Below are positions 31,339-63,569 of a stretch of 64,000 bases of DNA, in pieces. Location: sequence record NC_047815.1; one strand, given 5' to 3'. Below the pieces are notes generated by a model. It was not told where the DNA came from. It made no database searches and saw only the letters and a list, made by a program, of their open reading frames with translations. The translations under genes and the position numbers were made by a program. Within the stretch, counting starts at the first letter, position 1. Every line of letters begins with the position of its first letter.

Positions 31339-33492
31339 TTATCGATTGTCTCTGGCCTGACGTGCAAGGAATTGAGCTAGTTCTGCTTCTTCACTAAGCT
31401 CATCGTTGTCACTCATGTCGGGAGCGCCGATGTCGGCATCATCCATCCAACTGTCGTCCCACTCACCTACGTCGTCATCGTCCTCATCTTCGTCATCAAA
31501 CAAGATGTTGTTAGCACGAGCTGGTGTTGGCGCAGGTTCATCTTCGTCATCATCGCCCTCTTCTGGATCTTCAAACGCGTCATCCCAATCATCATCGTCG
31601 TCACTCATGTCTGGAATGTCATCATCCTCACCATCTTCCATCTCCGCTTTTACATCAAGAATGATGTCGGCGCGATACTCAGCCAGTGCTGTTTCGAATA
31701 CCTTGTCAGCAATCGTTGAGGCAGAGTCGTCGGATTTAACCATCGCGGTAGAGGTTCTGGATTCAGGATCGATTATACCATACACTGGATAGAGATCATC
31801 AAGCGCATTGAAACGGTAGCGACTGAAATTATGGTTTTCTACAACGTAGCTAACAGTGAACTCTTTAGCACCTGTCTCCTCAGCTATGGAAGATACAAGA
31901 TTGAGATAATCACCGCCACGCAGAGCGTCCATATGTACAGGTTTGTAACCCTTAAACACTTCGCTAGCATACTTGAAATATTCAGGCAGCACATGTTCTC
32001 GATTGCGCTCAAGGCTTTCAAGAGACGCAGGAGATTCACCAACACGATTTGCCAAAGAGATAACAGCAGGAGCAATGCACTCGGTCTGCATTTCGTCCTC
32101 ATCATCATACTCTTCTTCAATATCAGCAGGTACAACGTTGTCGTTGTTTATGCGACTTGCCGTATACCAGAAGTTACGTTCAGCATCAGCAGTATCTTTA
32201 ACCAAAGTCCAGATCTCGGAAAGTGCTTTAGGATAACCGCCTTTAATATGGTCTTCACGACTGTAGCTATACGGAATGATGTTGAACAGATGTTTGTTAA
32301 AGAAATTCTCACGATCTGAATCAGGCAAGATTTGCAAGAACATGTCCATAGCTTTAACAGAGCGGCTTGACTTGCGCCACATGTCCAGAACGTATTTAGA
32401 ATCAGAGCCAGTTGTTGTGACTAAGGCACGACTGAGATCTTGAAACTCTTGCAGCTTGTCTGTGCGAATCATGTCATCTGCCAGCAGAGACCAACGGGCT
32501 GTCTTCCAACCAGCAAGAGCAAGCATTGCTGGAATTTTCGGGTAACGTTGAGAGGCACGTCGCGCAATGTCGAACTCTTCTGTGTTAACACCGTCAAGAA
32601 GTCTGTCTCGGTGGTTAACAAACTGATCAACAAAGGTCTTGAGATCACCTTTAGCTAGTGGCTGTTCTAGGTCATACACATACTCAGCACCACGCTTGTC
32701 GTCATACAGCTTAGGCGCCAGTTCATATACACCTTGACGAGGTGATGCGGCAATCTTAGGATTGATGTGCTCATCCAGCCACGCCTGCAACGTGTGAACA
32801 AAAGGCATGGTAGAATCTGGATAAGCGTACTCTACCAGATACATCGCATTAACCTTACCCCCAATCTTGAGCTGACTGTTTTTAACGCCTTTAGTACGTT
32901 CATAGAAAGGCTTGGCAAGACAGCGAGCAATAGGTTTGTTGATGTTGCGATCTTTGGGTTCAATTAAATACGCGATCAACGTGCCTTGATTAATATCGTG
33001 ACCAACATACTTACGGTTGCTGCCATCAACAAGATGCATACAGCTAGTCCAGCCTCGATCTGTAGACATGCCTGCAATATCGTAAGGATGCATCGAGATA
33101 CAGATAAGCTGGTGGTTGCGTGTTGCATTGGTCAGAGATTTACGTTGAGGGTCAGAGTCGAATGCTTTCTTGGCTTCGGCGGATTTAAGAGCGCGACCTA
33201 TACGCACGACACGACCATGACGATCTTTGCCTGTACCAGCAACGTAATCAACAATCTCAATATCTTTCAAGCGGAGTTCGTCTTCAACCAGCTTAGGAGG
33301 CTTGACGTTATCCACTATGTTTTTGATAACGTTGTCTGTCTTGGCGTCAATATAGATGCGCATGGCTTTACGGCCACGCTTGCCGCTGATCTGTTCAAAC
33401 AATTTCAACAGCGTAGGATTAGGCTTCCACCCTTTAACAAACTTTCTGTACAGTGATGGAGGCAAAGCACTGAGGCTAACAACGATTTCCAT
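31339..33492 (-). CDS. Hypothetical 717-aa protein with N-terminal MEIVVSLSA motif and very acidic C-tail
   Basis: Central ISMHPYDIAGMSTDRGWTSCM segment; last ~100 aa largely D/E. Confidence 0.85.
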   Translation of the reverse strand: MEIVVSLSALPPSLYRKFVKGWKPNPTLLKLFEQISGKRGRKAMRIYIDAKTDNVIKNIVDNVKPPKLVEDELRLKDIEIVDYVAGTGKDRHGRVVRIGRALKSAEAKKAFDSDPQRKSLTNATRNHQLICISMHPYDIAGMSTDRGWTSCMHLVDGSNRKYVGHDINQGTLIAYLIEPKDRNINKPIARCLAKPFYERTKGVKNSQLKIGGKVNAMYLVEYAYPDSTMPFVHTLQAWLDEHINPKIAASPRQGVYELAPKLYDDKRGAEYVYDLEQPLAKGDLKTFVDQFVNHRDRLLDGVNTEEFDIARRASQRYPKIPAMLALAGWKTARWSLLADDMIRTDKLQEFQDLSRALVTTTGSDSKYVLDMWRKSSRSVKAMDMFLQILPDSDRENFFNKHLFNIIPYSYSREDHIKGGYPKALSEIWTLVKDTADAERNFWYTASRINNDNVVPADIEEEYDDEDEMQTECIAPAVISLANRVGESPASLESLERNREHVLPEYFKYASEVFKGYKPVHMDALRGGDYLNLVSSIAEETGAKEFTVSYVVENHNFSRYRFNALDDLYPVYGIIDPESRTSTAMVKSDDSASTIADKVFETALAEYRADIILDVKAEMEDGEDDDIPDMSDDDDDWDDAFEDPEEGDDDEDEPAPTPARANNILFDDEDEDDDDVGEWDDSWMDDADIGAPDMSDNDELSEEAELAQFLARQARDNR

Positions 33493-33510
33493 AATGTTCT
33501 CTTGCGTGAC

Positions 33511-34020
33511 TTATCGATGTTTAAAATTAGTTTGAAACTTTAACCAATCACGCCATAAATGCTTTACTGGTTTGTTTTTTCTCTCTGCATAGTCTACACA
33601 ATTCTGTGTACCTGAAGGGGCGCCGCAAGCCATTGCATACAACTGACTGGTGTTGTCAACTATAAAGTTGTTGCGTTGGTTCAGCGCAATTGGGGCATGT
33701 TCCTTGGCCCACTCTTGTTCCGACACGACTATTATCACTTCATTGCTGCGGTTTAGTATCGTGTCGAGTTCCAACACACTTGACAAAGGCCAACGTGCGT
33801 TAAAGCCCAGAAAAGGAATACAGCTAACTACCCGATGACCCTGATCAAGGGCAGCGGTTGCAACAGCCATATCAAAACCCAAAGCACAGCCGTGATAGAC
33901 TGTGTGTTCATCCTCAATCCTCAACATCTGATTGTGAACAAACTTATACAAGCGTTGACGCGCTTGATCATTAAAGCCACCGAGGCGGTTTGGTCTGTGG
34001 CCTGTAAATCCGATATTCAT
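33511..34020 (-). CDS. YspA/DUF1273 SLOG-family protein (169 aa)
   Basis: IGFTGHRP..LGG, HGCALGFD, RNNFIVD, SGTQNCV.YA. Confidence 0.8.
   Translation of the reverse strand: MNIGFTGHRPNRLGGFNDQARQRLYKFVHNQMLRIEDEHTVYHGCALGFDMAVATAALDQGHRVVSCIPFLGFNARWPLSSVLELDTILNRSNEVIIVVSEQEWAKEHAPIALNQRNNFIVDNTSQLYAMACGAPSGTQNCVDYAERKNKPVKHLWRDWLKFQTNFKHR
33524..33530 (-). promoter_or_regulatory. CTAATTT promoter-like motif at the end of the YspA gene
   Basis: 32 nt upstream of 33492. Confidence 0.4.
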
Positions 34021-34027
34021 CTATCAG

Positions 34028-34036
34028 TATTTACAG
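34028..34036 (-). promoter_or_regulatory. CTGTAAATA motif overlapping the stop codon of the upstream gene
   Basis: Exact copy just upstream of 34020. Confidence 0.45.
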
Positions 34037-34915
34037 AGTTACCTTCTGTTGGGCTGTGAGGAACGTTATGGACTGCCTGGTGCCTGGATCAACACTGGCT
34101 GCAACGTTAAAGTCTGTGCCGCGTGCTAACCTAATATAAATGTTCTTACTCGAAACATAACCCAGAGCAAACTGTAGTGTTACTTTCTCAGCAGTCCTAG
34201 ATGTTGCCAGTTTAGCAGTGTACTTGCCAGGCACAGCTACGGTGCTGTCCGAAACAAAGTTTGATGGACCAACTGTTGGTGAGTAAGGAGCAGCAACATA
34301 ATCTACTTTCTTAGTATTCATAACAGTCAAGACAGGATTGACCGTCACTGTACTCAGCAGGGCACTGAGGCCAGGCCAAGACTTTGAGTAGGTTTGCTTT
34401 GTACTGAATGTTCCGTCAGCGAATGCTTGCCAACCAACATACGTCATCGTGATAGCAGGAAGTATGCCCAAAAGAGGCACTGTATTCTTGATACCAAATG
34501 AAGGCGCTGTTAGTTCCTGACTACTGACCGTGTCCAAAGCACTAGGCCACAGCACAGCAGTAGGTCCAGCAGTTGAGTCGTAAGCATAGTTTGATAGAAC
34601 ACTTGCAAACGGACTTTTACCCCAAGCAACACTGTTGTGAAATATATCCACCAGCTTTGAATATGTCTCACTTCCTTGTGCGTATCGCAACTGTGTTAGG
34701 TAATAAGTTGTTCGCGTTGAGTCTACACCTCTTACAGGATTTGTTGTGCCACTAAAACCTAATGCAGCACGACTATCCCTCAAGATGGAACTCAGGTTGT
34801 TGAGAAGAACATCAGTCTTTTTATTAACGGAGGTGTCAAGCGTTGGGTCAAAGAACAAAAGTTCTCGACACTGATCCGATAAGTCAGACGGTGAGAAGTT
34901 GGTGACAAACTGCAT
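34031..34915 (-). CDS. 294-aa S/T/aromatic-rich protein, paralog of 35012-35893
   Basis: MQFV...ELLFFDPTLD N-terminus and DF.V...PGT C-terminus shared with its neighbour. Confidence 0.8.
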   Translation of the reverse strand: MQFVTNFSPSDLSDQCRELLFFDPTLDTSVNKKTDVLLNNLSSILRDSRAALGFSGTTNPVRGVDSTRTTYYLTQLRYAQGSETYSKLVDIFHNSVAWGKSPFASVLSNYAYDSTAGPTAVLWPSALDTVSSQELTAPSFGIKNTVPLLGILPAITMTYVGWQAFADGTFSTKQTYSKSWPGLSALLSTVTVNPVLTVMNTKKVDYVAAPYSPTVGPSNFVSDSTVAVPGKYTAKLATSRTAEKVTLQFALGYVSSKNIYIRLARGTDFNVAASVDPGTRQSITFLTAQQKVTL

Positions 34916-35011
34916 ATCTGTCTCCTTTTAGTTTTTTGTCGATGGCATTCCTCTTTAGTTAGCTGCTTGACGTCCTAAGCAGGTTGATGAAACCTATCTT
35001 CCATGAGAGGT

Positions 35012-35893
35012 TTAAACCTCAATAACATCTTTACGAATAAAGCGCATTGGAGGTTTAGTTCCAGGCACAGCACTATTATCTGTACCTACAAGAAAATCGC
35101 TTTGATCAAACTTAAACATACTACCAAGTGATGCGTAGTATGTCAGGCCACAATCAAATACAACCGTTTCATCAGAGGCGGCCAGTTGTCCCTGAATGTA
35201 GCACAGCAAGTTATCATCAATAGGTTGCGAATCCCACAATATCTGATTTGTACCCGAAGCATAGCTTATACTGTAAGCATATCGAACACGACCATAGTTA
35301 CTTAACTTGGCTGTGGCTCGTACCTCAACTGTTTGATAAGGTTGTCTCTCACTTCCGTTAGCTCCGGCAGATCCGCTTGTGTAGGAATTACTACTTCCGT
35401 AGTAGTAACCATAAGCAAAGCTGATATTCCACGAGTAACCGCCATAACTACCAGCATTGTATGTGTTTTGATACGACAAACGACTAAACGCAACAGTACG
35501 GCTGCCCTCACCGTATAGGCGTGTCATCATAAAATCTTTCGCACCAGCAGCTATGCTTTGGAAAGTTCCTGTATACAGTTCTTTATCAGCTCCCTTAGAT
35601 AGGGCTGTTCGATTCTGCTGGGTCATACCTACAGTAAAACCACGAACAGCACCTTCGGGATCTTGATATTTAAAGTTAGATAGCCAGAACTTGTCTTGTT
35701 GTTGACCAACCACACCGTTAACTAAACCCTCACCAACAATACCGCGAGAATATGCAGATGTGTTAATGTAATCGCTTACGCTGTTTATCTGGTTTAGATC
35801 GTATTGACTGTCATCTAACACGGTATCAAACAGAACGATCTCAGGAGTTCCACGCTGAGTATTAAGATGCCAGTTACCCATTACAAGTTGCAT
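35012..35893 (-). CDS. 293-aa G/S/Y-rich protein, paralog of 34031-34915
   Basis: MQLV...EIVLFDTVLD and DFLV...PGT. Confidence 0.8.
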   Translation of the reverse strand: MQLVMGNWHLNTQRGTPEIVLFDTVLDDSQYDLNQINSVSDYINTSAYSRGIVGEGLVNGVVGQQQDKFWLSNFKYQDPEGAVRGFTVGMTQQNRTALSKGADKELYTGTFQSIAAGAKDFMMTRLYGEGSRTVAFSRLSYQNTYNAGSYGGYSWNISFAYGYYYGSSNSYTSGSAGANGSERQPYQTVEVRATAKLSNYGRVRYAYSISYASGTNQILWDSQPIDDNLLCYIQGQLAASDETVVFDCGLTYYASLGSMFKFDQSDFLVGTDNSAVPGTKPPMRFIRKDVIEV

Positions 35894-35933
35894 ATCTCTA
35901 ACCTCTAACCTTCACCTTTGTAGGTGCATACAG

Positions 35934-36299: not shown

Positions 36300-36323
36300 A
36301 GGAAATCTCCTTCGGAAACGACA

Positions 36324-36412: not shown

Positions 36413-38050
36413 CTATTTAGTAGAACCTTTACGGCCAACACTAACAATTGCTGCACGCTGACGCGCACCAGCAGTTTCAAGCATATCTTGGATATGGTCA
36501 CTGTCAATGCCGTGCTTTTTCATATCCGCAGCAGAAATATCGTAACGCACATCATCTTTCGTTACGATGGTAATACTGCCATCTTTTTTAGTCGCGTAGT
36601 TGGACTTTTTGAAATCAGACTTTTTGATAGGCGTACCAAGTGCTGAACGAAGGGCCTTCATCTGTGCGCGATCTTCTAATGCAAAGCCTTTCATCATATC
36701 TGCAACACGTTCAGCATGACCAGCACGAGGTACTTTCTGATAGCGAGGCTTCTTGCCCATCAGACCTTGAGCACGCGCTTGTTTTTCTTTCGCTGCGCTG
36801 TGTCCGCCAGTAGCACCAGCCATACCTTTCTTAGGTGCTACAGTTTTAGCAGGGGCACGTTGGGCAGCAGCGGTAACTTTACCTGCACCAAGTGCTTCAA
36901 ACTTAGAGTCTGGGGCAAACTTAGGTTTGAAAGTACCGCGCTTACCGTCAGCACCAAACACGTCAGTTTTAACGGCAGCCAGTTTCTTAGCACTAGCCAA
37001 GATGTCCGCATTTACAGGCATCTTCAATCCACCAAGACCGTGACTACGCGCTGACTTGTTTGCAGCACTCAGAGCAGCTTTAGCAGTTTTGTTCAGTGCG
37101 CTAGCCTGACCTTTCAGCGTTTTAGCCTTAGCCTTTAGTGCTTTCTTGCGCTCAGGTGTTGAAGCCTTCTCGGCAGCGGCAGCGGTTTTCTCGTGCTGTG
37201 CTGCAACGCGTAACGCTTTGGTACGATCTGACTTAGCTTGCTTGAGGTGAGTTTTAATCTCGGTCAAGGCAGCACGCTTACTGCTAGGCAGAACCAATTC
37301 TGCTTTACCACTAACGCGAGCAAATTTATAGCTAGGTGCTTTTGCAGATTCTGACACTAATTCCTGACCGGGAATGGTGAGACGGATAAGCGACATATCA
37401 TGGTTCCTTAAATTTTCATATCGTCGAGAGTAACGACCGCTACGTGCTGTCGCCGGATCCGGCTGTGCAACGTTGACGTCATCAAAGTTTTTATGAAGTT
37501 CACTGGCAATAGCTTCTCGCAGCTCAGCCACATGTTCTTCGTCGTTGTCCGCAGAAGGATCTGCAAGACTGATTTCAATTTCACCACGAGGTTGATTGTA
37601 TACAGCGTAGCGAATTGGTGCAATGGTTTGAGTCTGACGCCATTCTTCCAGCACTGTGTCAATCAGCGGACTTGCTTCAATGCCAAAGTCATCAAGACTG
37701 AACTTGATACTAGACAATGGTGGAGGTCCGCTGTGACTGACAACCGCACTGTGTTTAATGTTTTCAATAGCGCGTGTTGCATCATACATCGTTTGCAGAC
37801 CACGTTCATGCAACATGATCTTGCTGCCGATAGTATAATCACTTGCCATCATGCCGACTTGAATAAGGTCTACACTCAACACAGAATAATCACCATCAGG
37901 CGTTGCGATAACAAACGCATAGCGTGGGTTACGCATTGTGCCACCAAGCTTTTGACAAGCTAAGATGCGAGCAGCAGGGTTGGTGCGCTGGAAGATTTTC
38001 TGTAGTTGTAAGTTAGTAAGATCAGCACTCAGAGAAACAACCTTCTCCAT
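36413..38050 (-). CDS. Hypothetical 545-aa protein with MEKVVSLSA N-terminus and Lys/Ala-rich C-half
   Basis: Long ORF coupled to the endolysin stop. Confidence 0.85.
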   Translation of the reverse strand: MEKVVSLSADLTNLQLQKIFQRTNPAARILACQKLGGTMRNPRYAFVIATPDGDYSVLSVDLIQVGMMASDYTIGSKIMLHERGLQTMYDATRAIENIKHSAVVSHSGPPPLSSIKFSLDDFGIEASPLIDTVLEEWRQTQTIAPIRYAVYNQPRGEIEISLADPSADNDEEHVAELREAIASELHKNFDDVNVAQPDPATARSGRYSRRYENLRNHDMSLIRLTIPGQELVSESAKAPSYKFARVSGKAELVLPSSKRAALTEIKTHLKQAKSDRTKALRVAAQHEKTAAAAEKASTPERKKALKAKAKTLKGQASALNKTAKAALSAANKSARSHGLGGLKMPVNADILASAKKLAAVKTDVFGADGKRGTFKPKFAPDSKFEALGAGKVTAAAQRAPAKTVAPKKGMAGATGGHSAAKEKQARAQGLMGKKPRYQKVPRAGHAERVADMMKGFALEDRAQMKALRSALGTPIKKSDFKKSNYATKKDGSITIVTKDDVRYDISAADMKKHGIDSDHIQDMLETAGARQRAAIVSVGRKGSTK

Positions 38051-43191: not shown

Positions 43192-43223
43192 AAACAGAAA
43201 AGGGCGGCCCGTTAAGGCTGCCC
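43192..43223 (-). terminator. Intrinsic terminator
   Basis: GGGCGGCC-CGTTAA-GGCTGCCC hairpin with U-tail on minus. Confidence 0.65.
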
Positions 43224-43472
43224 AGAGAATTTGTGACGCTTGCCGCTATTCATGTAGTGGTCTGAGTAGAAAGGACCGCTAACGCCTTTCAGACCTAACT
43301 TGCGTTTGATCTTGTTCTTGCGTGCAAACTGAAACTTTAGGTGCTTGTTGCGTTCACGCTTGCGACTCATAGGCCAGTCACGCATCTGATTCTCAATACG
43401 ACGAAGACTCTGGTCTACTTTAACAAGTGCTTGGTAACTCTCATCAGCGGAGAAACTTATTACGATTTCCAT
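43212..43472 (-). CDS. Small basic 86-aa protein with MEIVISFSA N-terminus
   Basis: TGATG overlap start after AAGGAG; K/R-rich. Confidence 0.75.
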   Translation of the reverse strand: MEIVISFSADESYQALVKVDQSLRRIENQMRDWPMSRKRERNKHLKFQFARKNKIKRKLGLKGVSGPFYSDHYMNSGKRHKFSGQP

Positions 43473-43912
43473 CAACGTCTCCTTAAAGTCTTACGCTTGT
43501 CAGGATTAGTGCGTTTAGGTCGCTTGATCATGTGGTACGCTTTTCTGGATTGAGCGATCAAACGACGGAGTTCTTTGCGACGATCACGCTTGGCGTCGGT
43601 GTCTTTATCAGTGCCCTCATCGTTCTTCAAACGGTCGAGTTCCGCACTGAGTCTATCAATCTGTTGAGCACGGCCTAGCTTTTGTTGCTGCACACGGACA
43701 ATGTCCTGTTGTGTCTGACGACTACGCTGGGCGTGTTGCATCTTTTTACGAGCACCTTCAACAGGCTTACCTGCTGTTTGTGTCTCGGTTACATGACGTC
43801 GAGCTTTGGTCTCATTACGTCTCGCATTCTGCAATTCATTCTGACTGTTCTCAAGACTGACTCGTTGATTCTCAGTCATCTTGGATTGACTTAAACTGAT
43901 AAGGATTTCCAT
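43472..43912 (-). CDS. Basic coiled-coil 146-aa protein with MEILISLSQ N-terminus
   Basis: Start reassigned to the ATG after GGAG; R/K/Q-rich. Confidence 0.75.
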   Translation of the reverse strand: MEILISLSQSKMTENQRVSLENSQNELQNARRNETKARRHVTETQTAGKPVEGARKKMQHAQRSRQTQQDIVRVQQQKLGRAQQIDRLSAELDRLKNDEGTDKDTDAKRDRRKELRRLIAQSRKAYHMIKRPKRTNPDKRKTLRRR

Positions 43913-45935: not shown

Positions 45936-45968
45936 TGTATGCCCTATTTAGTATATGCTCTCGTATGA

Positions 45969-45977
45969 TATTTACAG
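45969..45977 (-). promoter_or_regulatory. CTGTAAATA promoter-like motif upstream of dnaX
   Basis: Intergenic exact copy. Confidence 0.55.
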
Positions 45978-45995
45978 ATTTTAAGTCCTCAGACG

Positions 45996-46029
45996 AAAAA
46001 ATGGGACAGACCAAATCCATGGCTGTCCC
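45996..46029 (-). terminator. Intrinsic terminator
   Basis: GGGACAG...CTGTCCC with U-run on minus. Confidence 0.6.
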
Positions 46030-46112
46030 TGTATAAAATGTTTACATTCAATGAGCAATAAAGACACAATCCTAGGAAAATCCTAGAGGGCATTCACAGT
46101 GGCAACAGTGAA

Positions 46113-46316
46113 TTAGGCTACAAGCGAAAGTGAAGGTTCTACTCTTGCACTCACACTCGAAAACAGGTTAAACTCTGGTGGCGGGTTCTTGTCGATTCCG
46201 CTAATCAATTTTTCTACTTCTGTATAACTGCGAATGTCAGAACGAACAACGCGAGTTTCAAAGGTTCCATCTGGCCGGATTAAGTCGACCACTACACGGT
46301 AACAACTTCTCAGCAT
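46113..46316 (-). CDS. Hypothetical 67-aa protein
   Basis: GGGAG RBS; CTGTAAATA at 46375-46383. Confidence 0.65.
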   Translation of the reverse strand: MLRSCYRVVVDLIRPDGTFETRVVRSDIRSYTEVEKLISGIDKNPPPEFNLFSSVSARVEPSLSLVA

Positions 46317-46374
46317 TTTAATCTCCCACAGAAGGGACCAACATTGATCCCTGCTTTTTAACTTTGCTGCTCTA

Positions 46375-46383
46375 TATTTACAG
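46375..46383 (-). promoter_or_regulatory. CTGTAAATA promoter-like motif
   Basis: Intergenic exact copy. Confidence 0.55.
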
Positions 46384-46414
46384 AAACAACAAACTTCTGG
46401 GCGTGAGACTATTC

Positions 46415-50000: not shown

Positions 50001-50531
50001 TCACTTTTCTTTACGGACATCGGCTGTTACCTCACGCGGTAAGTGGCAGGAAGAAACGCAGCTAGCACACCAACTTCCTGAAGTGCAGGACAGACTGGAA
50101 ACTATTGGTTGATGATGATCGTCAAGAACAATAATCAACTGTTCGAACCAATGGTCAGTATCATGCATTGCCAACTCAAGCGCGGCAATGTCATAGCTGG
50201 TGGCTATCTGTCGATCTATAACAACGTATTGTGGGCGACTGCTTGATGCAATATCACCAGCAATCTGACCCACACCCAAACCTTTAGGAACAATGTATCG
50301 TTCAATCTCTGCCGTGACTTCGCGTTCGTCTCGGGTGATCATTGTTAGTTCAAAACCAAATGCTTGCATACGTTCAACGAACACGTGGTCGAAGATTCTA
50401 AAAACAGAACGGTCAACGGACACGTCTACTACAGATATACCAAGTGGGCGATCTACGCGGACTGTTGCGCGAAAGCCTTCTACTTGGGAGAAACTCGAAA
50501 TCAGAGCATTAACGATATGGGCTTTATACAA
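50001..50531 (-). CDS. Hypothetical 176-aa protein
   Basis: TTG start; Cys-rich C-end. Confidence 0.6.
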   Translation of the reverse strand: MYKAHIVNALISSFSQVEGFRATVRVDRPLGISVVDVSVDRSVFRIFDHVFVERMQAFGFELTMITRDEREVTAEIERYIVPKGLGVGQIAGDIASSSRPQYVVIDRQIATSYDIAALELAMHDTDHWFEQLIIVLDDHHQPIVSSLSCTSGSWCASCVSSCHLPREVTADVRKEK

Positions 50532-50580
50532 GGTGTTGTTGTCTCACTAAGAGGAAAAATGAATCAATATATTATTGGTA

Positions 50581-50727
50581 TTATTCGTCGTCGGGATCAA
50601 CGCCGACTTTGCGGCAGAACTCGTCGAACTCTTCTTCGGACATTGTTTCCATAGCTTTGTTACGAACAATGTCCCAATGCTCTTCGGTTAATGAACGAAG
50701 AAACATCAACTCATCTTCATTAAACAT
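50581..50727 (-). CDS. 48-aa acidic mini-protein (below the track cutoff)
   Basis: GGAG + ATG: MFNEDELMFLRSLTEEHWDIVRNKAMETMSEEEFDEFCRKVGVDPDDE. Confidence 0.7.
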   Translation of the reverse strand: MFNEDELMFLRSLTEEHWDIVRNKAMETMSEEEFDEFCRKVGVDPDDE

Positions 50728-50729
50728 AG

Positions 50730-51068
50730 TTACTCCTTATCAGGGTCTCGTTGAATGAACGCATCGGATTTACCTAACTCGATTTCCAACATGCGTTCAA
50801 GGTCAAAGCCGTGTAGAGGATGTTGTGCAGGAAACTGCTGATCAACCTCTGACTTTTTCTTGTAGTAAACGAAAGCAGGCGTGACGAACTCTGACTTTTT
50901 GTTGAAGTCAAAGTTTTCAGCATTGCGCAACACCTTCTGCCTAGCCCGCTGTTTATTGCTGCGGTGTCGGTCAAGACAACTCTTAGTATCAAGGTCGTCA
51001 AAGATACCAGTACGACGCACGTACCTAAAGTTCGGATGAACACTGATATGTTTTACGATTGCAGTCAT
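50730..51068 (-). CDS. Hypothetical 112-aa protein
   Basis: Overlaps the stop of the upstream gene. Confidence 0.65.
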   Translation of the reverse strand: MTAIVKHISVHPNFRYVRRTGIFDDLDTKSCLDRHRSNKQRARQKVLRNAENFDFNKKSEFVTPAFVYYKKKSEVDQQFPAQHPLHGFDLERMLEIELGKSDAFIQRDPDKE

Positions 51069-52042
51069 CTGGAATATTTCCCATAGACGCGATATATCAA
51101 ACCTTCCGTACGTTCGATAATCGCATATTTAATACTGCGACTTGGATTATATTCACCAGAAATCATTTCTGAAACATGAATATTCTTAGCACTACCAACA
51201 TCAATAGAGGCAGCGCGAAGTTTAAACCCAGTACCAATTGAGAAGTTTTGATTGGACTCAGCACCAACAAGCGCAGTTGGCATAGGTCCTTTCTTTCCTT
51301 TGAAAATCCATTTATCCCAAATAGCGTTACATGCTTTTGTACCGCGAGTAACAATCGATCGAGGTACATCGCCACCAATCTTTTTCCTTAGAGCAGTTAT
51401 ATATTGAGAAGAAGGCTCGGGTAAGGTTTTCTTGATTGAAGTTTTACGCAGCTTCTCATTCCAAGAATCGTAAGCTATGACTTTTGCTTTACGATAATGG
51501 TCTAATATCACTGCCTGTTCAATGTTAGCCTCAATCAAGAAACAGAAAATATTGGGATCATTCTCACGGCGCTCATTGTGTTGCTTGCGCAAGCGAGTGT
51601 TTATTTCGTATTTAATATACGAAGCCCAATTATAGATACAAACCAAATGCAGCAGGTCTGTGTCGCGTCCTTTTCCCACAGCCCAAAACACAAGCGGGAT
51701 TGCATAAGCTAATATGCAATCCTTATCAAACATAGCCTTCTTCAATTTTTCAATATCAATCGCATTCTCATCTTGAGGCGAAAGAAGAATCTCACATTTT
51801 CTGTGACTTGTTGCCAGTGAACTATTACCCTCATACATTTCATCAATGGTTGTTTCACCAATAAGATCAAGTGCCTGCTGCGGAGTAACTTTTGGCCAAG
51901 TATCAAGATTCAGCAGAGGTGCCTGCCGCATTTTGAATTCGTACAAAAAGAGAAAATCGTTAACTGTCAGACGAGCAGGCAACTCAAATTCTTTTTGGTC
52001 AGACACCGACGCGGTCGACGCCGGGCGCTTTGCCTTAACCAT
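51065..52042 (-). CDS. Hypothetical 325-aa protein, AT-rich
   Basis: GAGG RBS; follows the PolA-like gene. Confidence 0.75.
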   Translation of the reverse strand: MVKAKRPASTASVSDQKEFELPARLTVNDFLFLYEFKMRQAPLLNLDTWPKVTPQQALDLIGETTIDEMYEGNSSLATSHRKCEILLSPQDENAIDIEKLKKAMFDKDCILAYAIPLVFWAVGKGRDTDLLHLVCIYNWASYIKYEINTRLRKQHNERRENDPNIFCFLIEANIEQAVILDHYRKAKVIAYDSWNEKLRKTSIKKTLPEPSSQYITALRKKIGGDVPRSIVTRGTKACNAIWDKWIFKGKKGPMPTALVGAESNQNFSIGTGFKLRAASIDVGSAKNIHVSEMISGEYNPSRSIKYAIIERTEGLIYRVYGKYSR

Positions 52043-52051
52043 TACATGTCC

Positions 52052-53710
52052 TCATTCTTTTTCGTAATATTTCGCATATGCTCTATTTACAGTATTCTCT
52101 TGATTGCCAGACACCGTTTTAGACATAATGCATCGTTTGTCGTTCTTGAAGGTGTGGCCATTTTCCCAAACCTTGTCAAACAATCGAATTGCGTCAGTGG
52201 TTGTGCAGAATGGCTTTTCCTCCATATCGATACAATTGTTGTAAGTACCACAAACGATAGCTCCATCAAACTCAGCACTGCACCAAAGATTTTGAGCAAG
52301 CACCTCAAGAAGTTTTTGGCTCTCTCGACCTTGAATGTAATGACTCAAAATCGAATAACGTTCCTTCTTGATTTTAGTGAAGGGTATTTGATACGAACAT
52401 TCAACATCGTTGACAAATGAATAAACCGCATTACGATTGTAGGCTTTTTCGATCAATCGATCAATCAATTGAGATACAATATCCGCCGCAGGTTTATAAA
52501 TACTTTTCCATTTCTGCCATATGCCCAACACATAGGCATTTTGCGCGAGTTCAGTTTGTTTTGGAGAATCAGGTACGATAAGAGATTCGAGAACTTTAAG
52601 AACTTTAGAATCCTTCCACAAGGCTTTGGCCAAAGGTGTTAACACTGATCTGCGGTTGTCACCAATAGACACAGTTATTTTATACTGATTCTGCCAGCCC
52701 TTGTAGATTCCACCAAAGTTTAACGTCTTGGCAGTGTCGCGCGTTACACCTAACGTTTTAGCCAAGTAACCATGATCGATATGAATAGTATCTGGTATTT
52801 CCAGATCGTTTTCTTCAAGAAGTTCTTTGAGAATGGTTATATGAGCCTGACTCATATCATAGTTGGTACCATATGTATGATCAAAACACAAACGCTTAAC
52901 AGGTTTAAGAAATGCCTGACTGATACCAAACATACGACTGCCGACATCGTTGATGTAATACTGGTCATAGAACTCAACGATGCGATCTTTTTCCGTGCCA
53001 CCAACAACTTTGAAGCCAAGCCTAGACGCTCGTTCCAACACAGCCCATAGTTTGGAGTACGCGCTGTGCTTTCCGTGATAGTCGAGGTTTCTCAGACAAT
53101 CTAAGGCTCTATCAAGATAAAATCTGTAAGGACGTTGATTATCAATAGCCCTCTCGATAAGATCTGAAATTTCAGCCTTTCCTCGTCTAAGATTTGCTGG
53201 ACGCACTATACGGTGTTTGATAATCTCAGGCACTATGGAACGTTCAATCAGGTCAGACTTTGATTTAGCCTTAGGTCTACGTCGAAGCCTGACGGTTATA
53301 TCGTATAGAGGTTCATCTACGGTATTAGCCTTACGGAATTTCCGCTCAAATGATGGTTTAAACTGCCATTCTCGACAACGCCCTTTTATATAGTCGAAAG
53401 GCGTTACAATTAATACGGACTCCAGCCAAGCCTGAATTTCAGGATTTTTACGATAAACCAAGGCATATCTAGCAGGATTTCTACTGTCTCGAAACCAATT
53501 GTACGGTACAGGCACTTGATGCTTCATTTTACGTCCAGTAAGACCTGTGCGTTCTGCGATGTGCAGGAACAAGAAGGACAAACTGTCGTAAAATCTATTT
53601 ACATCTGCCCCAATAGGAACAGGGCAGCTTTGAATCGTATCCCAAAATACTTTATGGGCAGACATGGGAACTAAACGCGTCCCACGATAGGCAAAGTTGC
53701 TTTTCTTCAT
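52052..53710 (-). CDS. Divergent family-A-like (PolA/T7-RNAP superfamily) palm-domain protein, ~552 aa, no exonuclease
   Basis: Motif A NYDMSQAH, motif B RDTAKTLNFGGIYKG and motif C AEFDGAIV, in the correct order. Confidence 0.65.
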   Translation of the reverse strand: MKKSNFAYRGTRLVPMSAHKVFWDTIQSCPVPIGADVNRFYDSLSFLFLHIAERTGLTGRKMKHQVPVPYNWFRDSRNPARYALVYRKNPEIQAWLESVLIVTPFDYIKGRCREWQFKPSFERKFRKANTVDEPLYDITVRLRRRPKAKSKSDLIERSIVPEIIKHRIVRPANLRRGKAEISDLIERAIDNQRPYRFYLDRALDCLRNLDYHGKHSAYSKLWAVLERASRLGFKVVGGTEKDRIVEFYDQYYINDVGSRMFGISQAFLKPVKRLCFDHTYGTNYDMSQAHITILKELLEENDLEIPDTIHIDHGYLAKTLGVTRDTAKTLNFGGIYKGWQNQYKITVSIGDNRRSVLTPLAKALWKDSKVLKVLESLIVPDSPKQTELAQNAYVLGIWQKWKSIYKPAADIVSQLIDRLIEKAYNRNAVYSFVNDVECSYQIPFTKIKKERYSILSHYIQGRESQKLLEVLAQNLWCSAEFDGAIVCGTYNNCIDMEEKPFCTTTDAIRLFDKVWENGHTFKNDKRCIMSKTVSGNQENTVNRAYAKYYEKE

Positions 53711-53740
53711 CAATACTCGCTTTTGCTCTTTCTTGTTGGT

Positions 53741-53748
53741 TATTTACA
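53741..53748 (-). promoter_or_regulatory. TGTAAATA promoter-like motif
   Basis: Upstream of 53710. Confidence 0.5.
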
Positions 53749-54210
53749 CTTTCCTTGCAGATAACCAACTATAGGGAGTATCAATACGGTATAAGTCTCT
53801 ACTTCTAGCTCTCTCAACCATCATCATATCAGGCATATATCAGTCAGATCAGCGTGAGCATGAGCCACTTTGGGTCACAATAAATAGCAAAATCAGACCG
53901 AGTAGAATCGCACGCTGGTAGCTTCTAACATAGCCGATAGGTGCATAGAATTCAAATCCATGCAAAAAATGAATTATATAGCAAATCGTGTCCGCAATAA
54001 GGTATTTCGATCCGCGCTATACCTGTGGAGCGTATAGGGACACCGCTGGTCGATAATCGTAAGGTTGAGAATTGCTAAAAACAGCTAAAAATCGACGATT
54101 TCTCAGGGATTGCAATTCTAATCGCCTGACGGGCGCCTACAAGCATGTCCTGCGGGCGCCTAAAATCCATGATTTTCAGACAAATCTCACCGTATTTTCA
54201 ACGGCGAAGA
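53749..54210. other. Long non-coding region with direct and inverted repeats (origin or packaging-site candidate)
   Basis: AAATCG-A-CGATTT palindrome 54089-54101; CGGGCGCCTA at 54130 and 54153; GCTAAAAA twice (54074, 54084); AGAATTGC/GCAATTCT inverted pair. Confidence 0.35.
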
Positions 54211-54903
54211 CTATTTTTTACGGCTAACAACCTGATTCAGCTTTTTGCCTATCTGATTAAAGATACGCTGAACCGTTTCACCGTCGTGATTTTTAATCGC
54301 CAGTGCAAGCTGTTCACCCTGTTCACGGCTCAATTCTGGCATAACCAGCTTCAACATCTGACTGCGCATCTTAGCTGATGGGCTTTTACCACGCGATTCG
54401 CTGGCCATCATAGTTGTAGCAGGCACACCGGCACGCTGTTGGTCTTCCACAGGAGTAGCTTCTGCGCCGGAAGGACGATTCACAATGCGACTAGGGTAAT
54501 CACCGCGTAGGATAGCAGCCAAACGCTCGCCCAGAGGTGCAAACAGCCGTTCAAATTCAGTTTTAGGCTGCCAGCTCTCGTCGCTGCTGTAGGTAAACAC
54601 ATCTTCGGTCATGATACGACCCTGTTTGCCTTCAACAGCCTTAACAGCCTGCTCACGACCTACCTGCTGCTCATCGTCAGTCTTTTTCAACTGGACAACA
54701 GCACGAGAACGCTTAGGTGCCACATAGCTGCGATTGTCTTCTCCCAGAACCTTGCCTGTCAAGCGGCTTTCATCGCCCATACCACGTACAGGAATATCTT
54801 CAACCGGCTCAGCCTCGTTTGTATGATCCACTGTTGCCTTTGTGAAATTGCCGCGCTGCACACGATATTCGCGGCTTTCGCTCAAGTTAATTTTTAGCTT
54901 CAT
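54211..54903 (-). CDS. Hypothetical 230-aa protein (MKLKINLSESR...)
   Basis: Start reassigned to the ATG after GAGGG, just downstream of the upstream gene's stop. Confidence 0.75.
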   Translation of the reverse strand: MKLKINLSESREYRVQRGNFTKATVDHTNEAEPVEDIPVRGMGDESRLTGKVLGEDNRSYVAPKRSRAVVQLKKTDDEQQVGREQAVKAVEGKQGRIMTEDVFTYSSDESWQPKTEFERLFAPLGERLAAILRGDYPSRIVNRPSGAEATPVEDQQRAGVPATTMMASESRGKSPSAKMRSQMLKLVMPELSREQGEQLALAIKNHDGETVQRIFNQIGKKLNQVVSRKK

Positions 54904-57007: not shown

Positions 57008-57047
57008 GGCCATAGATAAACTTATCTGTAAATCACAGGATTTATTT

Positions 57048-59397: not shown

Positions 59398-59412
59398 TCA
59401 GTTTAAACTCTC

Positions 59413-59431
59413 AAGGGCTGTCATGGCCCTT
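59413..59431 (+). terminator. Short hairpin terminator
   Basis: AAGGGC-TGTCATG-GCCCTT. Confidence 0.45.
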
Positions 59432-59458
59432 TAAAACTAAATATTCTGGAGAATTACC

Positions 59459-60109: not shown

Positions 60110-60111
60110 AT

Positions 60112-60150
60112 AAAAAAGGGAGGCCCCGTAATGAGGTCTCCCTTTTGTTT
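60112..60150. terminator. Bidirectional terminator between convergent genes
   Basis: AAAAAAGGGAGGCC...GGTCTCCCTTTTG. Confidence 0.8.
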
Positions 60151-61222
60151 ATGCCGCACGCCTTTTCTTTTTACTAACTGCTTTCTCAGCAGGCTTTCTG
60201 TTCCAGCCTAAACGTTTAGCAGGAATCAAACAACCTTTACCATATTTGTCACGCAGCACTGATTTCACTTCACGTATGATTTCAATCGGACAGTTATCTG
60301 GGTCTAGTTTGATCAACTTACCTTTATCATCTTTCTCACGAGGAAGTTTGAAGTGCTTTGATTTAAGACCGCTTGCACGAAACGCTTCATCAATCTTGCC
60401 GCGCAACAGTTTACCACCACCATCGTTATCAGTCATGGTATACACAGTACCGATATCAAGCATTTCAATTGAGCGAACTTTTGTTGAACCGAACTGCTCT
60501 GCACCCAACACAGCAAGAGCTGGAATGCCATACGACAACAAAGCAAGCGCATCACGAGGACCTTCAACAAGCACAACATAACGCAGCTTGTATTTGCGAA
60601 TCATCTTGCGTGTCAACTCAATCGGGAACAAGCCTTTATCTTTTGCCCAATCACCTTGTGAGTTTATATAGCTGGAGCCGTTCATCTGTTTAGACAGATA
60701 AGCAGCGACACCACCTATATATTTTGAACCATGCTTGCACGGAAAGAAACATACGTTTGAACCGGTACGCTGTGCATTCAACAGGCCACCAGCATCTTGC
60801 ACAAGTCTGCCTGGATAACCGCGCCACTCAACATCTTCTGGCCACTGCATGTAACTTGAACGACCGAGTGCTTTCATCAACAACGCTACTGATGCATAGG
60901 TACCAACTCGATTGCCAATCTTTTCATATGTCTGACGCAGCGCAGACAGCGAGTTTGTTCCAGCATCTTTTAACTTCCAGCCTTTGATGACTGCAAGACC
61001 TGCGTGCTCTGCAAGCTGATTCCAGTTGCCTCGAACACCACAACCAAAACAGTGATAAAACCCTAAAGGTATTTCCATACCAACTGATGTATAGATACCA
61101 CAGCTTGGTGTTTTATCGTGGTGAAACGGACAGCAGACCATCACTGTGTCACCATTATACTTCTTATCACCAGGCAGTTTGCCGATCTCTTCTATGATCG
61201 TCTGGTGAACGTCTTCGGACAT
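60149..61222 (-). CDS. dnaG: DNA primase (CHC2 zinc finger + TOPRIM), 357 aa
   Basis: CCPFHHDKTPS...HCFGCG; LVEGPRDAL; TDNDGGG. Confidence 0.9.
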   Translation of the reverse strand: MSEDVHQTIIEEIGKLPGDKKYNGDTVMVCCPFHHDKTPSCGIYTSVGMEIPLGFYHCFGCGVRGNWNQLAEHAGLAVIKGWKLKDAGTNSLSALRQTYEKIGNRVGTYASVALLMKALGRSSYMQWPEDVEWRGYPGRLVQDAGGLLNAQRTGSNVCFFPCKHGSKYIGGVAAYLSKQMNGSSYINSQGDWAKDKGLFPIELTRKMIRKYKLRYVVLVEGPRDALALLSYGIPALAVLGAEQFGSTKVRSIEMLDIGTVYTMTDNDGGGKLLRGKIDEAFRASGLKSKHFKLPREKDDKGKLIKLDPDNCPIEIIREVKSVLRDKYGKGCLIPAKRLGWNRKPAEKAVSKKKRRAA

Positions 61223-61238
61223 ATTGTCACCCGTTTGT

Positions 61239-61245
61239 CTAATTT
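61239..61245 (+). promoter_or_regulatory. CTAATTT motif (plus strand)
   Basis: 46 nt upstream of 61292. Confidence 0.5.
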
Positions 61246-61265
61246 AAACATGTACACTTAGGCGA

Positions 61266-61274
61266 TATTTACAG
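61266..61274 (-). promoter_or_regulatory. CTGTAAATA motif upstream of primase
   Basis: Exact copy in the divergent intergenic region. Confidence 0.55.
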
Positions 61275-61291
61275 TATTAGGAGCTGACACT

Positions 61292-61603
61292 ATGGCCGTC
61301 TACGCTACAAACACAACACGCCGTTTTTATCACGCTCACTGGTGCCGTCTTGCTCGTCATATTGGTCTGGATATTCAGCGTTACGCCGCATTTAACGGCG
61401 AAGATATGATTGGCCTGAAACTGCCGCGTGAGGGTTTCACTGCCGAGCAGTTGTTCACAAAGATGAACACCCTGAATAAAATTTCACAGACGGTAGAGAA
61501 CAAAGTACCTATGCGGGTTTACCTGTTTGGTGCTCGTCGCTATCGCTTTGTGCTTTTCGAGCAGTTTATCTCAGTAACAGAGGTATCTAATGAGGACGTT
61601 TGA
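61292..61603 (+). CDS. Hypothetical 103-aa protein
   Basis: AGGAG RBS. Confidence 0.7.
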   Translation: MAVYATNTTRRFYHAHWCRLARHIGLDIQRYAAFNGEDMIGLKLPREGFTAEQLFTKMNTLNKISQTVENKVPMRVYLFGARRYRFVLFEQFISVTEVSNEDV

Positions 61604-62666
61604 TGCCGTACCTAAGTTTATCGATCACAGGAAGTTGTCGCGTATCGGTAAAATGATTGATGCAGCCCTTGACCACACGGTTAAGGAGCGTCGTGAATAC
61701 GTAAAAAAGCGCGTTAGTCCCAGCATGTTTCCTATTTGCAGTGTGCAAGAGTATGCCAAGCAACTGTACTCAAAACACAACCGTGCAATGACGGGTGAAT
61801 CAGGAACCATGCTGAACATCTTTGCTAAAGCTGGTACAGGCATGCATGAATCAGTACAGAATGCTTTAGGCTTTAGCGGTCAGATGGTTGGTCACTGGAA
61901 GTGTCAGAACAGGAAATGTGCTGAACACCACAAGACCAAAGACGTGTGGAAAGATGGGCGCCGTGTCAAGAAGGGTAAGTACACGCGTACAAACTCGACT
62001 GACAACATGTGCCCCAACTGCAAGCAGCCTATGGCTTACAGTGAACTCAAGGTTCTCTATAAATCTCTTAAAGGATTTGTTGATGGGTTAATCGACAACC
62101 TTGATGGAACATACAGCATCATCGATCTGAAATCAACTATGGTCAGTAAAGCACAGGACGGTTCGTTCTTTGTCAAGTACCATCGCTATCAGATCGCTAC
62201 CTACGCCTACATCTTGTCAAAGCGTTATGGCTACAACATTGTGGACTACACGCTTGTGTATGTACCTCGTGATAATCCCAAGAAGTTTGTGGAGAAGTCA
62301 TTTGTCTACGACGAGAAAGAGGCACGAGCAGCGCGTGACTTTATGATGAAGCAGATCAATGCATGGGATGCAACGATCAAGTCTCTGCGCAAGGGTGATG
62401 CCAAGTACGCAATCAAACACAAGCCATGCCGTTCTGAGAAATATTATTGGGATGAGTTTCATGGCTATGATGAATGCCCTTTTTTGAACTACTGCTTTAT
62501 TGAATCTCGCCTTACGGAATTCCTTGAGCGTCTTGAACAGACAATCATGGCAAATCCTGACATGACCTACGCTGAGGTTGTTCGCCCACAAGCTGAACCG
62601 CAACAGGGTCTTGTCAAAAAGAAATTTCGAGAGAAGACCAAAGTCGTCAAGCAGTTTGAACTATGA
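61590..62666 (+). CDS. Cas4-like PD-(D/E)xK exonuclease with zinc-ribbon insert (358 aa)
   Basis: SPSMFPIC, GTGMHE, GFVDGL, IIDLKS, YQIATYA, C-terminal C...CPFLNYC; insert CQNRKC..CPNC. Confidence 0.85.
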   Translation: MRTFDAVPKFIDHRKLSRIGKMIDAALDHTVKERREYVKKRVSPSMFPICSVQEYAKQLYSKHNRAMTGESGTMLNIFAKAGTGMHESVQNALGFSGQMVGHWKCQNRKCAEHHKTKDVWKDGRRVKKGKYTRTNSTDNMCPNCKQPMAYSELKVLYKSLKGFVDGLIDNLDGTYSIIDLKSTMVSKAQDGSFFVKYHRYQIATYAYILSKRYGYNIVDYTLVYVPRDNPKKFVEKSFVYDEKEARAARDFMMKQINAWDATIKSLRKGDAKYAIKHKPCRSEKYYWDEFHGYDECPFLNYCFIESRLTEFLERLEQTIMANPDMTYAEVVRPQAEPQQGLVKKKFREKTKVVKQFEL

Positions 62667-63076
62667 AACGAGACTTTCAACGATCAGTTATGAGGATTCA
62701 AGAGGCTGTCAACATCTTGGAGTATGTCGGTCACGACTACGAACAACTCCAAACGGTGTCAGACAGCCTTGTTGATCCCCGTCTCATTCAGGACAAGAGC
62801 TATTGCCTGAGTGTTATGCTGTTGAGCCAAACGGCTATCACCGTTGCTCGCTATTTCGAAAGTATCAACCAGCTTGATATAAAGCGGCAGATGCTTGAAA
62901 ACAAATTGTACACGCCAGAGATAGGCAACAAGATCAAACGCATGGCAGAAGCGCGTCGTACCATAGAGCGTAACGTTGCGTGCTATCAAGGTCTGTTATC
63001 TTATCGCAGCAATCTAGTGCTGAACATCGTTCGTGGCGTTCCATTCGAAAACAGATATTTCAGACAGGAGCCTTAA
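62663..63076 (+). CDS. Hypothetical 137-aa protein
   Basis: Overlaps the stop of the upstream gene. Confidence 0.7.
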   Translation: MKRDFQRSVMRIQEAVNILEYVGHDYEQLQTVSDSLVDPRLIQDKSYCLSVMLLSQTAITVARYFESINQLDIKRQMLENKLYTPEIGNKIKRMAEARRTIERNVACYQGLLSYRSNLVLNIVRGVPFENRYFRQEP

Positions 63077-63077
63077 A

Positions 63078-63569
63078 TTGGAAATCATTGTCAGCATTAG
63101 TGCCACAGGCGCTGAAAAGAGTCGCAATCGTGTGGACAGCCAAGAGTCCACCACTGGTCGTGTAGACCTCAGCGAATACACAAACCTTGAAAAGAAGATT
63201 CGTCAAACAGAGGAAGCAAAAGAGAAGCAAGATCTTGCTAAAAAGGCGAGTGGCGAAAATTCTGTAAAGAAAAAGAAAGCTACTAAACCTGATGCAGATG
63301 ATGCTGGTGGAGACGACGATGATGATTCAGCAGATAATGCCTCATTTGGATTCGACGACGACTCCTCAGATGACTCTGGATCTGATGATGGAGACGACTC
63401 CGATGATTCCTCAGATAGCAAGCCCAAGAAAGGTAAAGGAAAGAAACCAGCGTCCGATGATGAAGATGGATCTGACGAATCCGAAGGTGACGACGGGTCT
63501 GACTCTGATGAAGACGATTCAGGATCAGATGACGAAGAGGAACTTGACGAAGCAGACTTGGAAGAGTGA
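63078..63569 (+). CDS. 163-aa D/E/S/G-rich low-complexity protein with MEIIVSISA N-terminus
   Basis: TTG at 63078, 7 nt after CAGGAG; acidic tail with a KPKKGKGKK insert. Confidence 0.75.
   Translation: MEIIVSISATGAEKSRNRVDSQESTTGRVDLSEYTNLEKKIRQTEEAKEKQDLAKKASGENSVKKKKATKPDADDAGGDDDDDSADNASFGFDDDSSDDSGSDDGDDSDDSSDSKPKKGKGKKPASDDEDGSDESEGDDGSDSDEDDSGSDDEEELDEADLEE

Follow-up and report, generated by a model that had tools for sequence, protein, structure and literature searches.

The genome of Erwinia phage vB_EamM_Yoloswag raises the question why proteins that are otherwise unrelated should begin with nearly the same eight residues, Met-Glu-Ile-x-Val-Ser-Leu-Ser, and what such an N-terminal peptide, in the following called the tag, could be good for. 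The DNA analysed here, referred to as the window, is a stretch of 64,000 nucleotides which matches positions 124001-188000 of the 259,700-bp Yoloswag record NC_047815.1 with 100% identity, and coordinates without accession or locus are window positions (record position minus 124,000). Among the jumbo phages, the myovirus Yoloswag belongs to a group that includes Alexandra, AD1, the JA phages, Y3, PaBG, and Lu11, with phiRSL1 as a more distant relative (PMC6143709, PMC7412058). A sequence-only reading of the window had pointed to the shared N-terminus on five proteins and had proposed a capsid-targeting or maturation signal. The tag is real and conserved and is present on at least eight unrelated Yoloswag proteins. 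Judged from sequence, it is probably, though by no means assuredly, a portable N-terminal capsid-targeting propeptide of the form M-[E/Q/K]-[I/V/L]-x-[V/I]-S-[L/I/F]-S, which would be cut after the Ser-x-Ser (S-x-S) end. In the searchable literature the tag is undescribed, and no virion proteome of Yoloswag or Alexandra was found there.

All five N-termini exist as described. On the minus strand, gp183 (31339..33492, 717 amino acids (aa), with an acidic C-terminal tail) begins with MEIVVSLS/A (33466-33492; the slash marks the putative cut), gp188 (36413..38050, 545 aa, isoelectric point (pI) 9.9, with an Ala/Lys-rich histone-like stretch) with MEKVVSLS/A (38024-38050), gp198 (43212..43472, 86 aa, pI 10.5) with MEIVISFS/A (43446-43472), and gp199 (43472..43912, 146 aa, pI 11.3, PHROG 28362) with MEILISLS/Q (43886-43912), whereby the ATG of gp198 overlaps the stop codon of gp199. 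On the plus strand, gp226 (63078..63569, 163 aa, 35% Asp+Glu, PHROG 30142) begins with (M)EIIVSIS/A (63078-63104). The RefSeq starts agree with all five tag Met positions, including the TTG of gp226. In-frame stop codons lie 7-19 codons upstream of these starts, and a GGAG-type ribosome-binding site precedes four of the five; gp183 has only a weak AAGAG, read by eye from a scan that does not score such sites. Three further carriers lie beyond the window, the Nudix hydrolase gp117, gp236 (MQIVFSLSN), and gp243 (MEIIVSLSF). The RefSeq start codon of gp117 (NC_047815.1 82791-83249, minus strand; GTG at 83237) is wrong, as it is four codons too short: the upstream ATG at 83249 gives MEIIVSLSA and overlaps the stop of the preceding gene (TAATG), and for the orthologues in AD1, pEa_SNUABM_3, and Yersinia phage fHe-Yen9-02 the annotation begins at the tag Met. 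The carriers thus comprise the very basic small proteins gp198 and gp199, the basic gp188, the very acidic gp226, gp183 with its acidic tail, the Nudix hydrolase, gp236, and gp243. The earlier description of the carriers as strongly basic or strongly acidic low-complexity proteins suits five carriers, but neither gp117 nor gp243.

The tag is bound to the very beginning of these proteins. The regular expression E-x-[VIL][VIL]-S-[LIFVM]-S has seven matches in the six frames of the whole 259.7-kb genome, and all seven stand directly after a start codon, at residue 2. A position-specific scoring matrix (PSSM), trained on known tag instances and applied to candidate starts as well as to 354,236 non-start positions, gave eight start-adjacent matches of at least 17.8, and not one of the non-start positions reached 14. 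A chance origin of the tag is ruled out by these statistics. The codons differ between carriers, as had been noticed from the window: Ser6 and Ser8 are drawn from both the AGY and the TCN box, only 41% of the same-residue pairs have an identical codon, and the 27 nt are on average 62% identical. Therefore, selection acts on the peptide. When the first nine residues are taken off, BLASTP finds no significant similarity among the eight carriers.

A comparison with relatives, which were sampled as genome parts (50 kb of JA11, 66 kb of PaBG, 16 kb each of Lu11 and phiRSL1), confirms both the confinement to starts and the conservation. Orthologues in pEa_SNUABM_5, AD1, JA11, other Alexandra-like phages, and contigs of the IMG/VR database retain M-[EQK]-h-x-h-S-h-S (h, hydrophobic), which extends over four genera plus uncultivated jumbo-phage contigs, and they differ at position 4, at position 9, in the start codon (ATG, GTG, or TTG), and in the remainder of the protein. 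Within the sampled parts of relatives 35 PSSM matches of at least 14 fall at starts and four elsewhere, one of the four being a start offset by one residue. The starts of gp199 orthologues are MEIVISLSD (pEa_SNUABM_5), MEIMVSLSV (AD1), MQVLISLSK (JA11), and MKILISLSA (an IMG/VR contig); a related-loci search seeded with gp199 returned Yoloswag only. Homologues of gp188 are present in 57 phage records, the one of pEa_SNUABM_5 beginning with MTQIVVSVSA and the JA11 counterpart with MEILVSISA, and of the separate open reading frames (ORFs) at the gp188 position in JA11 and AD1 several have their own tag or tag-like leader. The JA11 orthologue of gp226 begins with MHVLISLGA. Altogether ten genes with a tag or near-tag were counted in 50 kb of JA11, eight of them with a score of at least 14. 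An IMG/VR-wide scan, for which a single codon version of the tag served as pattern, had 13 matches; eight of them begin long ORFs on contigs of the lineage (seven of 253-267 kb, one of 38.8 kb), and the other five, in short ORFs or internal to ORFs, are read as chance. No tag was found in the parts of PaBG, Lu11, and phiRSL1 that were read, and the idea that PaBG shares the same tag was dropped.

The tag is also exchangeable in front of conserved domains. In gp183 it leads directly into a widespread N-terminal domain, AL-P-S-x-YRK-x-VKGW, which has 264 homologues. Among the best 120 of these about 85 are tagged, and 32 have M-x(3-10)-EALKPSQYR and no tag at the start; these 32 are found on small metagenome contigs and have an unrelated leader with the same domain after it. 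Nudix orthologues have the tag, a variable linker of 6-8 residues, and then the conserved domain, and in JA29 the tag has decayed. The NAD-dependent DNA ligase has a MKVQLSLS/A or MTDFKSIS/A extension in some lineages, and the Alexandra-like phages start directly at the conserved ISLKRL. The Yoloswag ligase starts with MAVQLSLKRL, without the second Ser (ligase loci L018-L042, about 2600-4600, plus strand). In certain members of the group, a replication enzyme may therefore be packaged beforehand. Taken together, the restriction to position 1, the presence on non-homologous proteins across genera, and the gain or loss on a conserved DNA ligase support that the tag acts as a portable signal.

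The S-x-S at its end recurs in the head proteins. The N-terminal region of the capsid protein has two S-x-S sites, LALS[ESQ]S/TGE (residues 34-36) and V[HQ]S[ETHVQ]S (residues 66-68), which are invariant in all sampled relatives of the Erwinia/Dickeya group, the middle residue being free. A cut at the second site would remove 18% of the major capsid protein, and the capsid protein of PaBG reportedly loses about 20% on maturation (PMC7412058). Between the genes of the prohead protease and the capsid protein lies gp140 (NC_047815.1 101141-103183, minus strand), a protein of 680 aa with 26% Asp+Glu and long D/E repeats, which reads as a scaffold-like protein, and its name "ATPase" (PHROG 20988) is probably wrong. 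The gp140 orthologues contain 21-31 S-x-S, compared with 7-13 in shuffled sequences (z 4.4-6.3; none of 500 shuffles reaches the observed number), and their counts of SS, SxxS, and SxxxS are well below that of S-x-S and close to the shuffle expectation for S-x-S. An alignment of 18 sequences has fifteen columns with S-x-S in at least 80%, where the middle residue often varies and a small residue often follows. The scaffolds of PaBG, Lu11, and phiRSL1 contain seven, two, and two S-x-S, respectively. The tag and the S-x-S-rich scaffold are both present in the Erwinia/Dickeya group, and the three S-x-S-poor phages are those without a tag in the parts read; therefore, tag and S-x-S-rich scaffold co-occur.

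The candidate for cutting at these sites is gp142. Its AlphaFold2 (AF2) model, built from a 39-sequence alignment (predicted local distance difference test (pLDDT) score 85.4; a shallow alignment of 13 sequences, 70-84% identical, gave an unusable pLDDT of 44), matches "prohead serine protease", COG3740, and XkdF models in BFVD with 1e-8 to 1e-5, and also the counterparts of PaBG, phiRSL1, and phage G. All 39 homologues have His122 and Ser179, and the scaffold and capsid genes adjoin. By its modelled fold, the conserved His and Ser, and this neighbourhood, gp142 is to be classed as an HK97-type (COG3740/S78-like) prohead serine protease. The protein itself contains S-x-S/F-D in a low-confidence and, to judge from the model, probably disordered N-terminal segment, and this site is invariant in 13 close relatives and retained in most of the 39 homologues. 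Besides, gp142 has a conserved C-x-x-C...C-x-H cluster that attracts zinc-finger noise, and sequence searches against solved structures returned only this noise. In one source gp142 (P0121) goes under "putative endolysin", but the fold is in favour of the name head maturation protease given by RefSeq and PHROGs.

Several proteins in relatives that carry the tag belong to domain families for which packaging is predicted. On a 265-kb uncultivated contig (L054) seven tandem genes have tagged or near-tag N-termini, with one SprT-like and two ART-PolyVal (ADP-ribosyltransferase, ART) domains according to Pfam, and JA11 gp190 (MELLISLSK) is an ART-PolyVal homologue (7e-20). ART-PolyVal, SprT/zincin peptidase, and SNF2 helicase are domains of polyvalent proteins, which are predicted to be packaged into the capsid and injected, with T4 Alt as the prototype (PMC5512222). 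Such effector domains are found on the tagged proteins of these relatives; the Yoloswag carriers give only Nudix, and searches of PHROGs, NCBIfam, PADLOC, and PDB revealed no function for them beyond Nudix for gp117. The virion proteome of PaBG contains a giant helicase of 221 kDa as band 1 (PMC7412058, Table 1), which is the orthologue of the Yoloswag SNF2 helicase gp172 (16411..22266, minus strand, 1951 aa). The latter begins with the shorter, tag-like MLISTS/K, and the N-terminus h-h-S-x-S-[AK] is conserved in Yoloswag, pEa_SNUABM_5, AD1, JA11, and PaBG. It is thus probable that the giant helicase gp172 is also a packaged protein. The PaBG virion contains furthermore a histone-like "gp191", which is found in several gel bands (PMC7412058) and was paired with its RefSeq gene by size and gene order. 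Its Yoloswag orthologue is the untagged gp181 (29404-30090, minus strand), an Ala/Lys-rich histone-like protein (MAVKRKLTSPQDP..KAKKAAAGKK) that is conserved in pEa_SNUABM_5, AD1, and JA11 and is likely an internal DNA-binding head protein.

If the tag is a capsid address, it could work in the following way. As a short beta-strand it would have a hydrophobic face (I3-V5-L7) and a polar face (E2-S6-S8) and could dock by strand addition in the assembling prohead core, either on the scaffold-like gp140 or on the inner face of the shell. There gp142 would cut after the second Ser of the tag, as it might do at the S-x-S in the N-terminal region of the capsid protein, in the scaffold, and in itself, and the trimmed cargo would stay in the head with the DNA and then be ejected into the host. 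Likely cargo would be the small very basic or acidic proteins, the Nudix hydrolase, gp183, gp188, and, with its shorter tag, the giant helicase; in relatives ADP-ribosyltransferases, a SprT-like peptidase, and NAD-ligase could be added. Docking, cleavage after Ser8, presence in virions, and ejection are steps that we infer, and a role of the carriers in DNA condensation is speculation. The proposal of a capsid-targeting or maturation signal therefore gains from the portability, from the S-x-S match to head proteins, from the packaged-type domains in relatives, and from the helicase in the PaBG virion, whereas its comparison to T4 and phiKZ is one by analogy only.

Several points weigh against a capsid-targeting propeptide. 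None of the carriers appears in a virion proteome, and the mature N-terminus is not known of a single protein of the clade; N-terminal sequencing data for phiRSL1 were not found in the literature, and the Matilda preprint is without processing data. In PaBG the helicase and the histone-like protein are packaged and neither has the full tag, so that not every internal protein needs the tag, and as the Yoloswag orthologue gp181 of the histone-like protein is untagged, the tag is not the sole route into the particle. A fold search of the gp142 model against solved structures gave nothing below E = 0.8, and a specificity for Ser at P1, the residue before the cut, is not established for HK97-type proteases. 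The scaffold sites are mostly hydrophobic at P5 (F-[AD]-S-x-S) and the tag at P6, P4, and P2, so that it is not obvious how both would suit one pattern of protease subsites. The carrier genes, finally, are situated among replication and recombination genes, outside the head module.

It has to be asked whether the tag is merely a propeptide that the protease can remove, as a maturation or inactivation cap cut at S-x-S, with any incorporation into the head depending on other parts of the proteins. We regard this as unlikely. It is true that the S-x-S link to the head proteins backs cleavage more directly than targeting, that PaBG does without the full tag as just described, and that packaging of DarB of phage P1 requires more than nine N-terminal residues (PMC9024508). 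However, E-I-x-V (positions 2-5) is as conserved as S-x-S, yet dispensable at the internal scaffold and capsid sites, the unrelated cargo proteins otherwise share nothing that could target them, and a prohead protease reaches only substrates that are already inside the prohead. Somewhat less likely still is a docking or degradation signal outside the capsid, for instance a degron recognised by a host AAA+ protease or a handle that a chaperone or hub protein of the phage binds, either of which would time the life of early proteins. The carrier genes stand among early or middle-type replication genes, several carriers are small and highly charged, as is typical of early host-takeover genes, and many distant relatives have Lys at position 2. 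The distant MK-I-L-I variants resemble the Met-basic-hydrophobic N-motif of ClpX. Nevertheless, Yoloswag and its close relatives mostly have Glu or Gln at position 2, degrons of this kind make no use of the invariant Ser-x-Ser, and neither the S-x-S in capsid protein, scaffold, and protease nor the ART-PolyVal and SprT-like domains on tagged proteins of relatives would be explained.

Two further explanations are both very improbable. Conservation could act on expression, by a favourable translation-initiation region or an effect of the nascent peptide, and GAA ATC indeed follows the start codon in six of the eight carriers; but the mixed Ser codons and the low codon and nucleotide identity given above do not fit, the orthologues exchange residues conservatively (I/V/L, E/Q/K) and change the start codon, and most genes of the phage lack the motif. 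Alternatively, the tag could be a functionless remnant of common descent between diverged paralogues or of recombination at a shared gene start, since tagged genes cluster in tandem and true paralogues exist among them (gp170 and gp244; a tandem pair of gp183-like genes in JA11 as well as in the 265-kb contig). Such a remnant would, however, not exceed the rest of each protein in conservation across genera. Moreover, enzymes that arose independently (Nudix, NAD-ligase, ART, SprT-like) bear the tag, and one and the same ligase has it in some lineages and lacks it in others. Two other candidates were rejected. The tag does not look like a Sec, Tat, or lipoprotein signal peptide, for which a positively charged n-region, 7-15 hydrophobic residues as a core, and an A-x-A or lipobox site would be expected, because an acidic position 2 and three alternating hydrophobic residues are followed by charged or polar sequence and a hydrophobic core is lacking. 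O-glycosylation sites for the glycosyltransferase adjoining the head module would leave the restriction to position 1 and the conserved E-I-x-V unexplained.

Looser S-x-S versions had been noticed near other N-termini of the window, and they turned out to be of different value: those of gp172, gp170, and gp215 are conserved in orthologues, whereas IESISG of gp177 (25633) is missing from the orthologues and is thus probably due to chance. gp170 (14607..15755, minus strand, 382 aa) has a longer leader to S-x-S/A, MPLINLNLNTGVASTS/ATKAQ, and is a paralogue (BLASTP E = 6e-14) of gp244 (outside the window, locus L006:11805-13262), which begins with MSIISLS/ATAAQ. The leaders of 16 and 7 residues, respectively, both end with S-x-S-A directly before a conserved ATxAQ...LFG-x-KG domain, as would be expected if the leader is cut off after S-x-S. 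Orthologues of gp170 have VVSVS/AANKKQ (AD1) and MLIKVNLSTS/ASKKQ (a 222-kb contig). The N-terminus of gp215 (54211..54903, minus strand, 230 aa), MKLKINLSES, is weaker and only tentatively a version of the tag; its orthologues begin with MKLRLSLSRE and MARIKISLSGE, and JA11 has no such pattern. Next to gp215 lies one of two stretches of about 480-500 bp without annotated gene (45936-46414 and 53711-54210), and the 2-kb bins from 50001 to 54000, in which the stretch starting at 53711 is contained, have the lowest G+C of the window (0.41-0.42).

Some further N-termini may be mentioned here. The tail-tube protein (1736, GTG start) begins with MASLSA. Members of the gp148 family (locus L018:657-2603 and orthologues; about 620-650 aa in the relatives read), the gene of which adjoins that of the ligase, start with M-[HVI]-L-S-x-S-A in those Yoloswag- and Alexandra-like relatives that were read, which is an even shorter leader. 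gp185 and gp186 (34031-35893, minus strand) are tandem proteins of about 293 residues with MQFVTNFSPSD and MQLVMGNWHL at their starts, both kept in pEa_SNUABM_5, and the former looks like a decayed tag. gp144 (NC_047815.1 105552-106556, minus strand) is annotated from a TTG with 244 aa; a frame that begins earlier, with (V)KMLISLSQNQDWW, shares about 190 nt with the 3' end of the glycosyltransferase gene, is conserved at the protein level in pEa_SNUABM_5 (MLLSLSNNPDWWKK), and is possibly a longer, tagged form.

Among known systems, T4 has a capsid targeting sequence (CTS) on IPI-III and Alt (Mullaney and Black 1996, summarised in PMC5694885, PMC9024508). Both are conserved peptides with which several otherwise unrelated proteins of a phage begin (10-20 residues in T4; here eight residues on eight carriers), and in both cases the proteins so marked comprise small charged ones as well as an ADP-ribosyltransferase, and their genes lie outside the head module. 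The T4 CTS ends in a cleavage motif of the prohead protease, and the S-x-S end of the tag, with its counterparts at conserved sites in capsid protein, scaffold, and protease, is the putative equivalent. However, the two are unrelated in sequence, and T4 gp21 cuts after Glu (L/I-x-E), whereas here the putative site is S-x-S and the protease is of the HK97/COG3740 type. With a putative Ser at P1 and such a protease the tag is an analogue of the T4 CTS, to which it is closest in its proposed function, and not a member of its family. Packaging, cleavage, and sufficiency were demonstrated experimentally for the T4 CTS; for the tag we infer them.

The nearest parallel to the giant helicase is DarB of phage P1, a giant (about 220-250 kDa) helicase-type protein with an N-terminal signal for the head, but the N-termini of the Dar proteins follow no consensus and more than nine residues make up the DarB signal, whereas one short consensus is present on many proteins here (PMC9024508). 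phiKZ, 201phi2-1, and SPN3US are likewise jumbo phages in which one three-residue motif (S/A/G-x-E) is found at many cleavage sites of capsid, portal, and ejection proteins, and the SPN3US paralogues gp53 and gp54 have an identical 15-residue N-terminus which the authors likened to the T4 CTS (PMC5694885, PMC7411985, PMC10052503). In the phiKZ-type phages, however, P1 is Glu, the propeptides mostly exceed 100 residues, and the shared N-terminus is confined to paralogues, whereas the Yoloswag tag stands on non-homologous proteins. Polyvalent proteins have the same effector domain families, but fused in one giant polypeptide instead of separate small proteins that are each tagged (PMC5512222). 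Unlike the phiKZ-type phages, the Yoloswag clade is also without the phiKZ-type set of virion RNA polymerase. In Staphylococcus phage 80alpha a leader of about 13 residues is cut from capsid and scaffold proteins at a fixed motif by the host protease Prp, and encapsulin cargo-loading peptides, which are usually C-terminal and uncleaved, dock cargo on the interior of the shell. Like the tag, both are short conserved terminal peptides tied to HK97-fold shells. Prp, however, is a host cysteine protease of Firmicutes and is not known from Enterobacterales.

Some corrections of annotation hold regardless of what the tag does, namely the start of gp117, the scaffold-like gp140 in place of an "ATPase", and the name "putative endolysin" for gp142. 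Should the tag prove to be a capsid address, the injected proteins of Yoloswagvirus, Rivsvirus, Alexandravirus, Salmondvirus, and their uncultivated relatives could be listed by a single regular expression; nearly all of these proteins are annotated as "hypothetical". The principle known from T4 would then have a second, independent example, in which the signal goes with an HK97-type protease and with Ser-x-Ser rather than a Glu site, and this would help to judge the frequency with which signals of this kind arise. Moreover, foreign proteins could be loaded into large capsids by means of a very short tag. More tentatively, the eight-residue tag and an S-x-S-cutting HK97-type protease may together make up a programmable protein delivery, in which gain or loss of the tag switches a product between "made after infection" and "pre-packaged and injected". 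The NAD-ligase would be an example of such a switch, and the phages of this group would inject a fast-changing set of proteins including ADP-ribosyltransferases, peptidases, the Nudix hydrolase, DNA-binding proteins, and the giant helicase.

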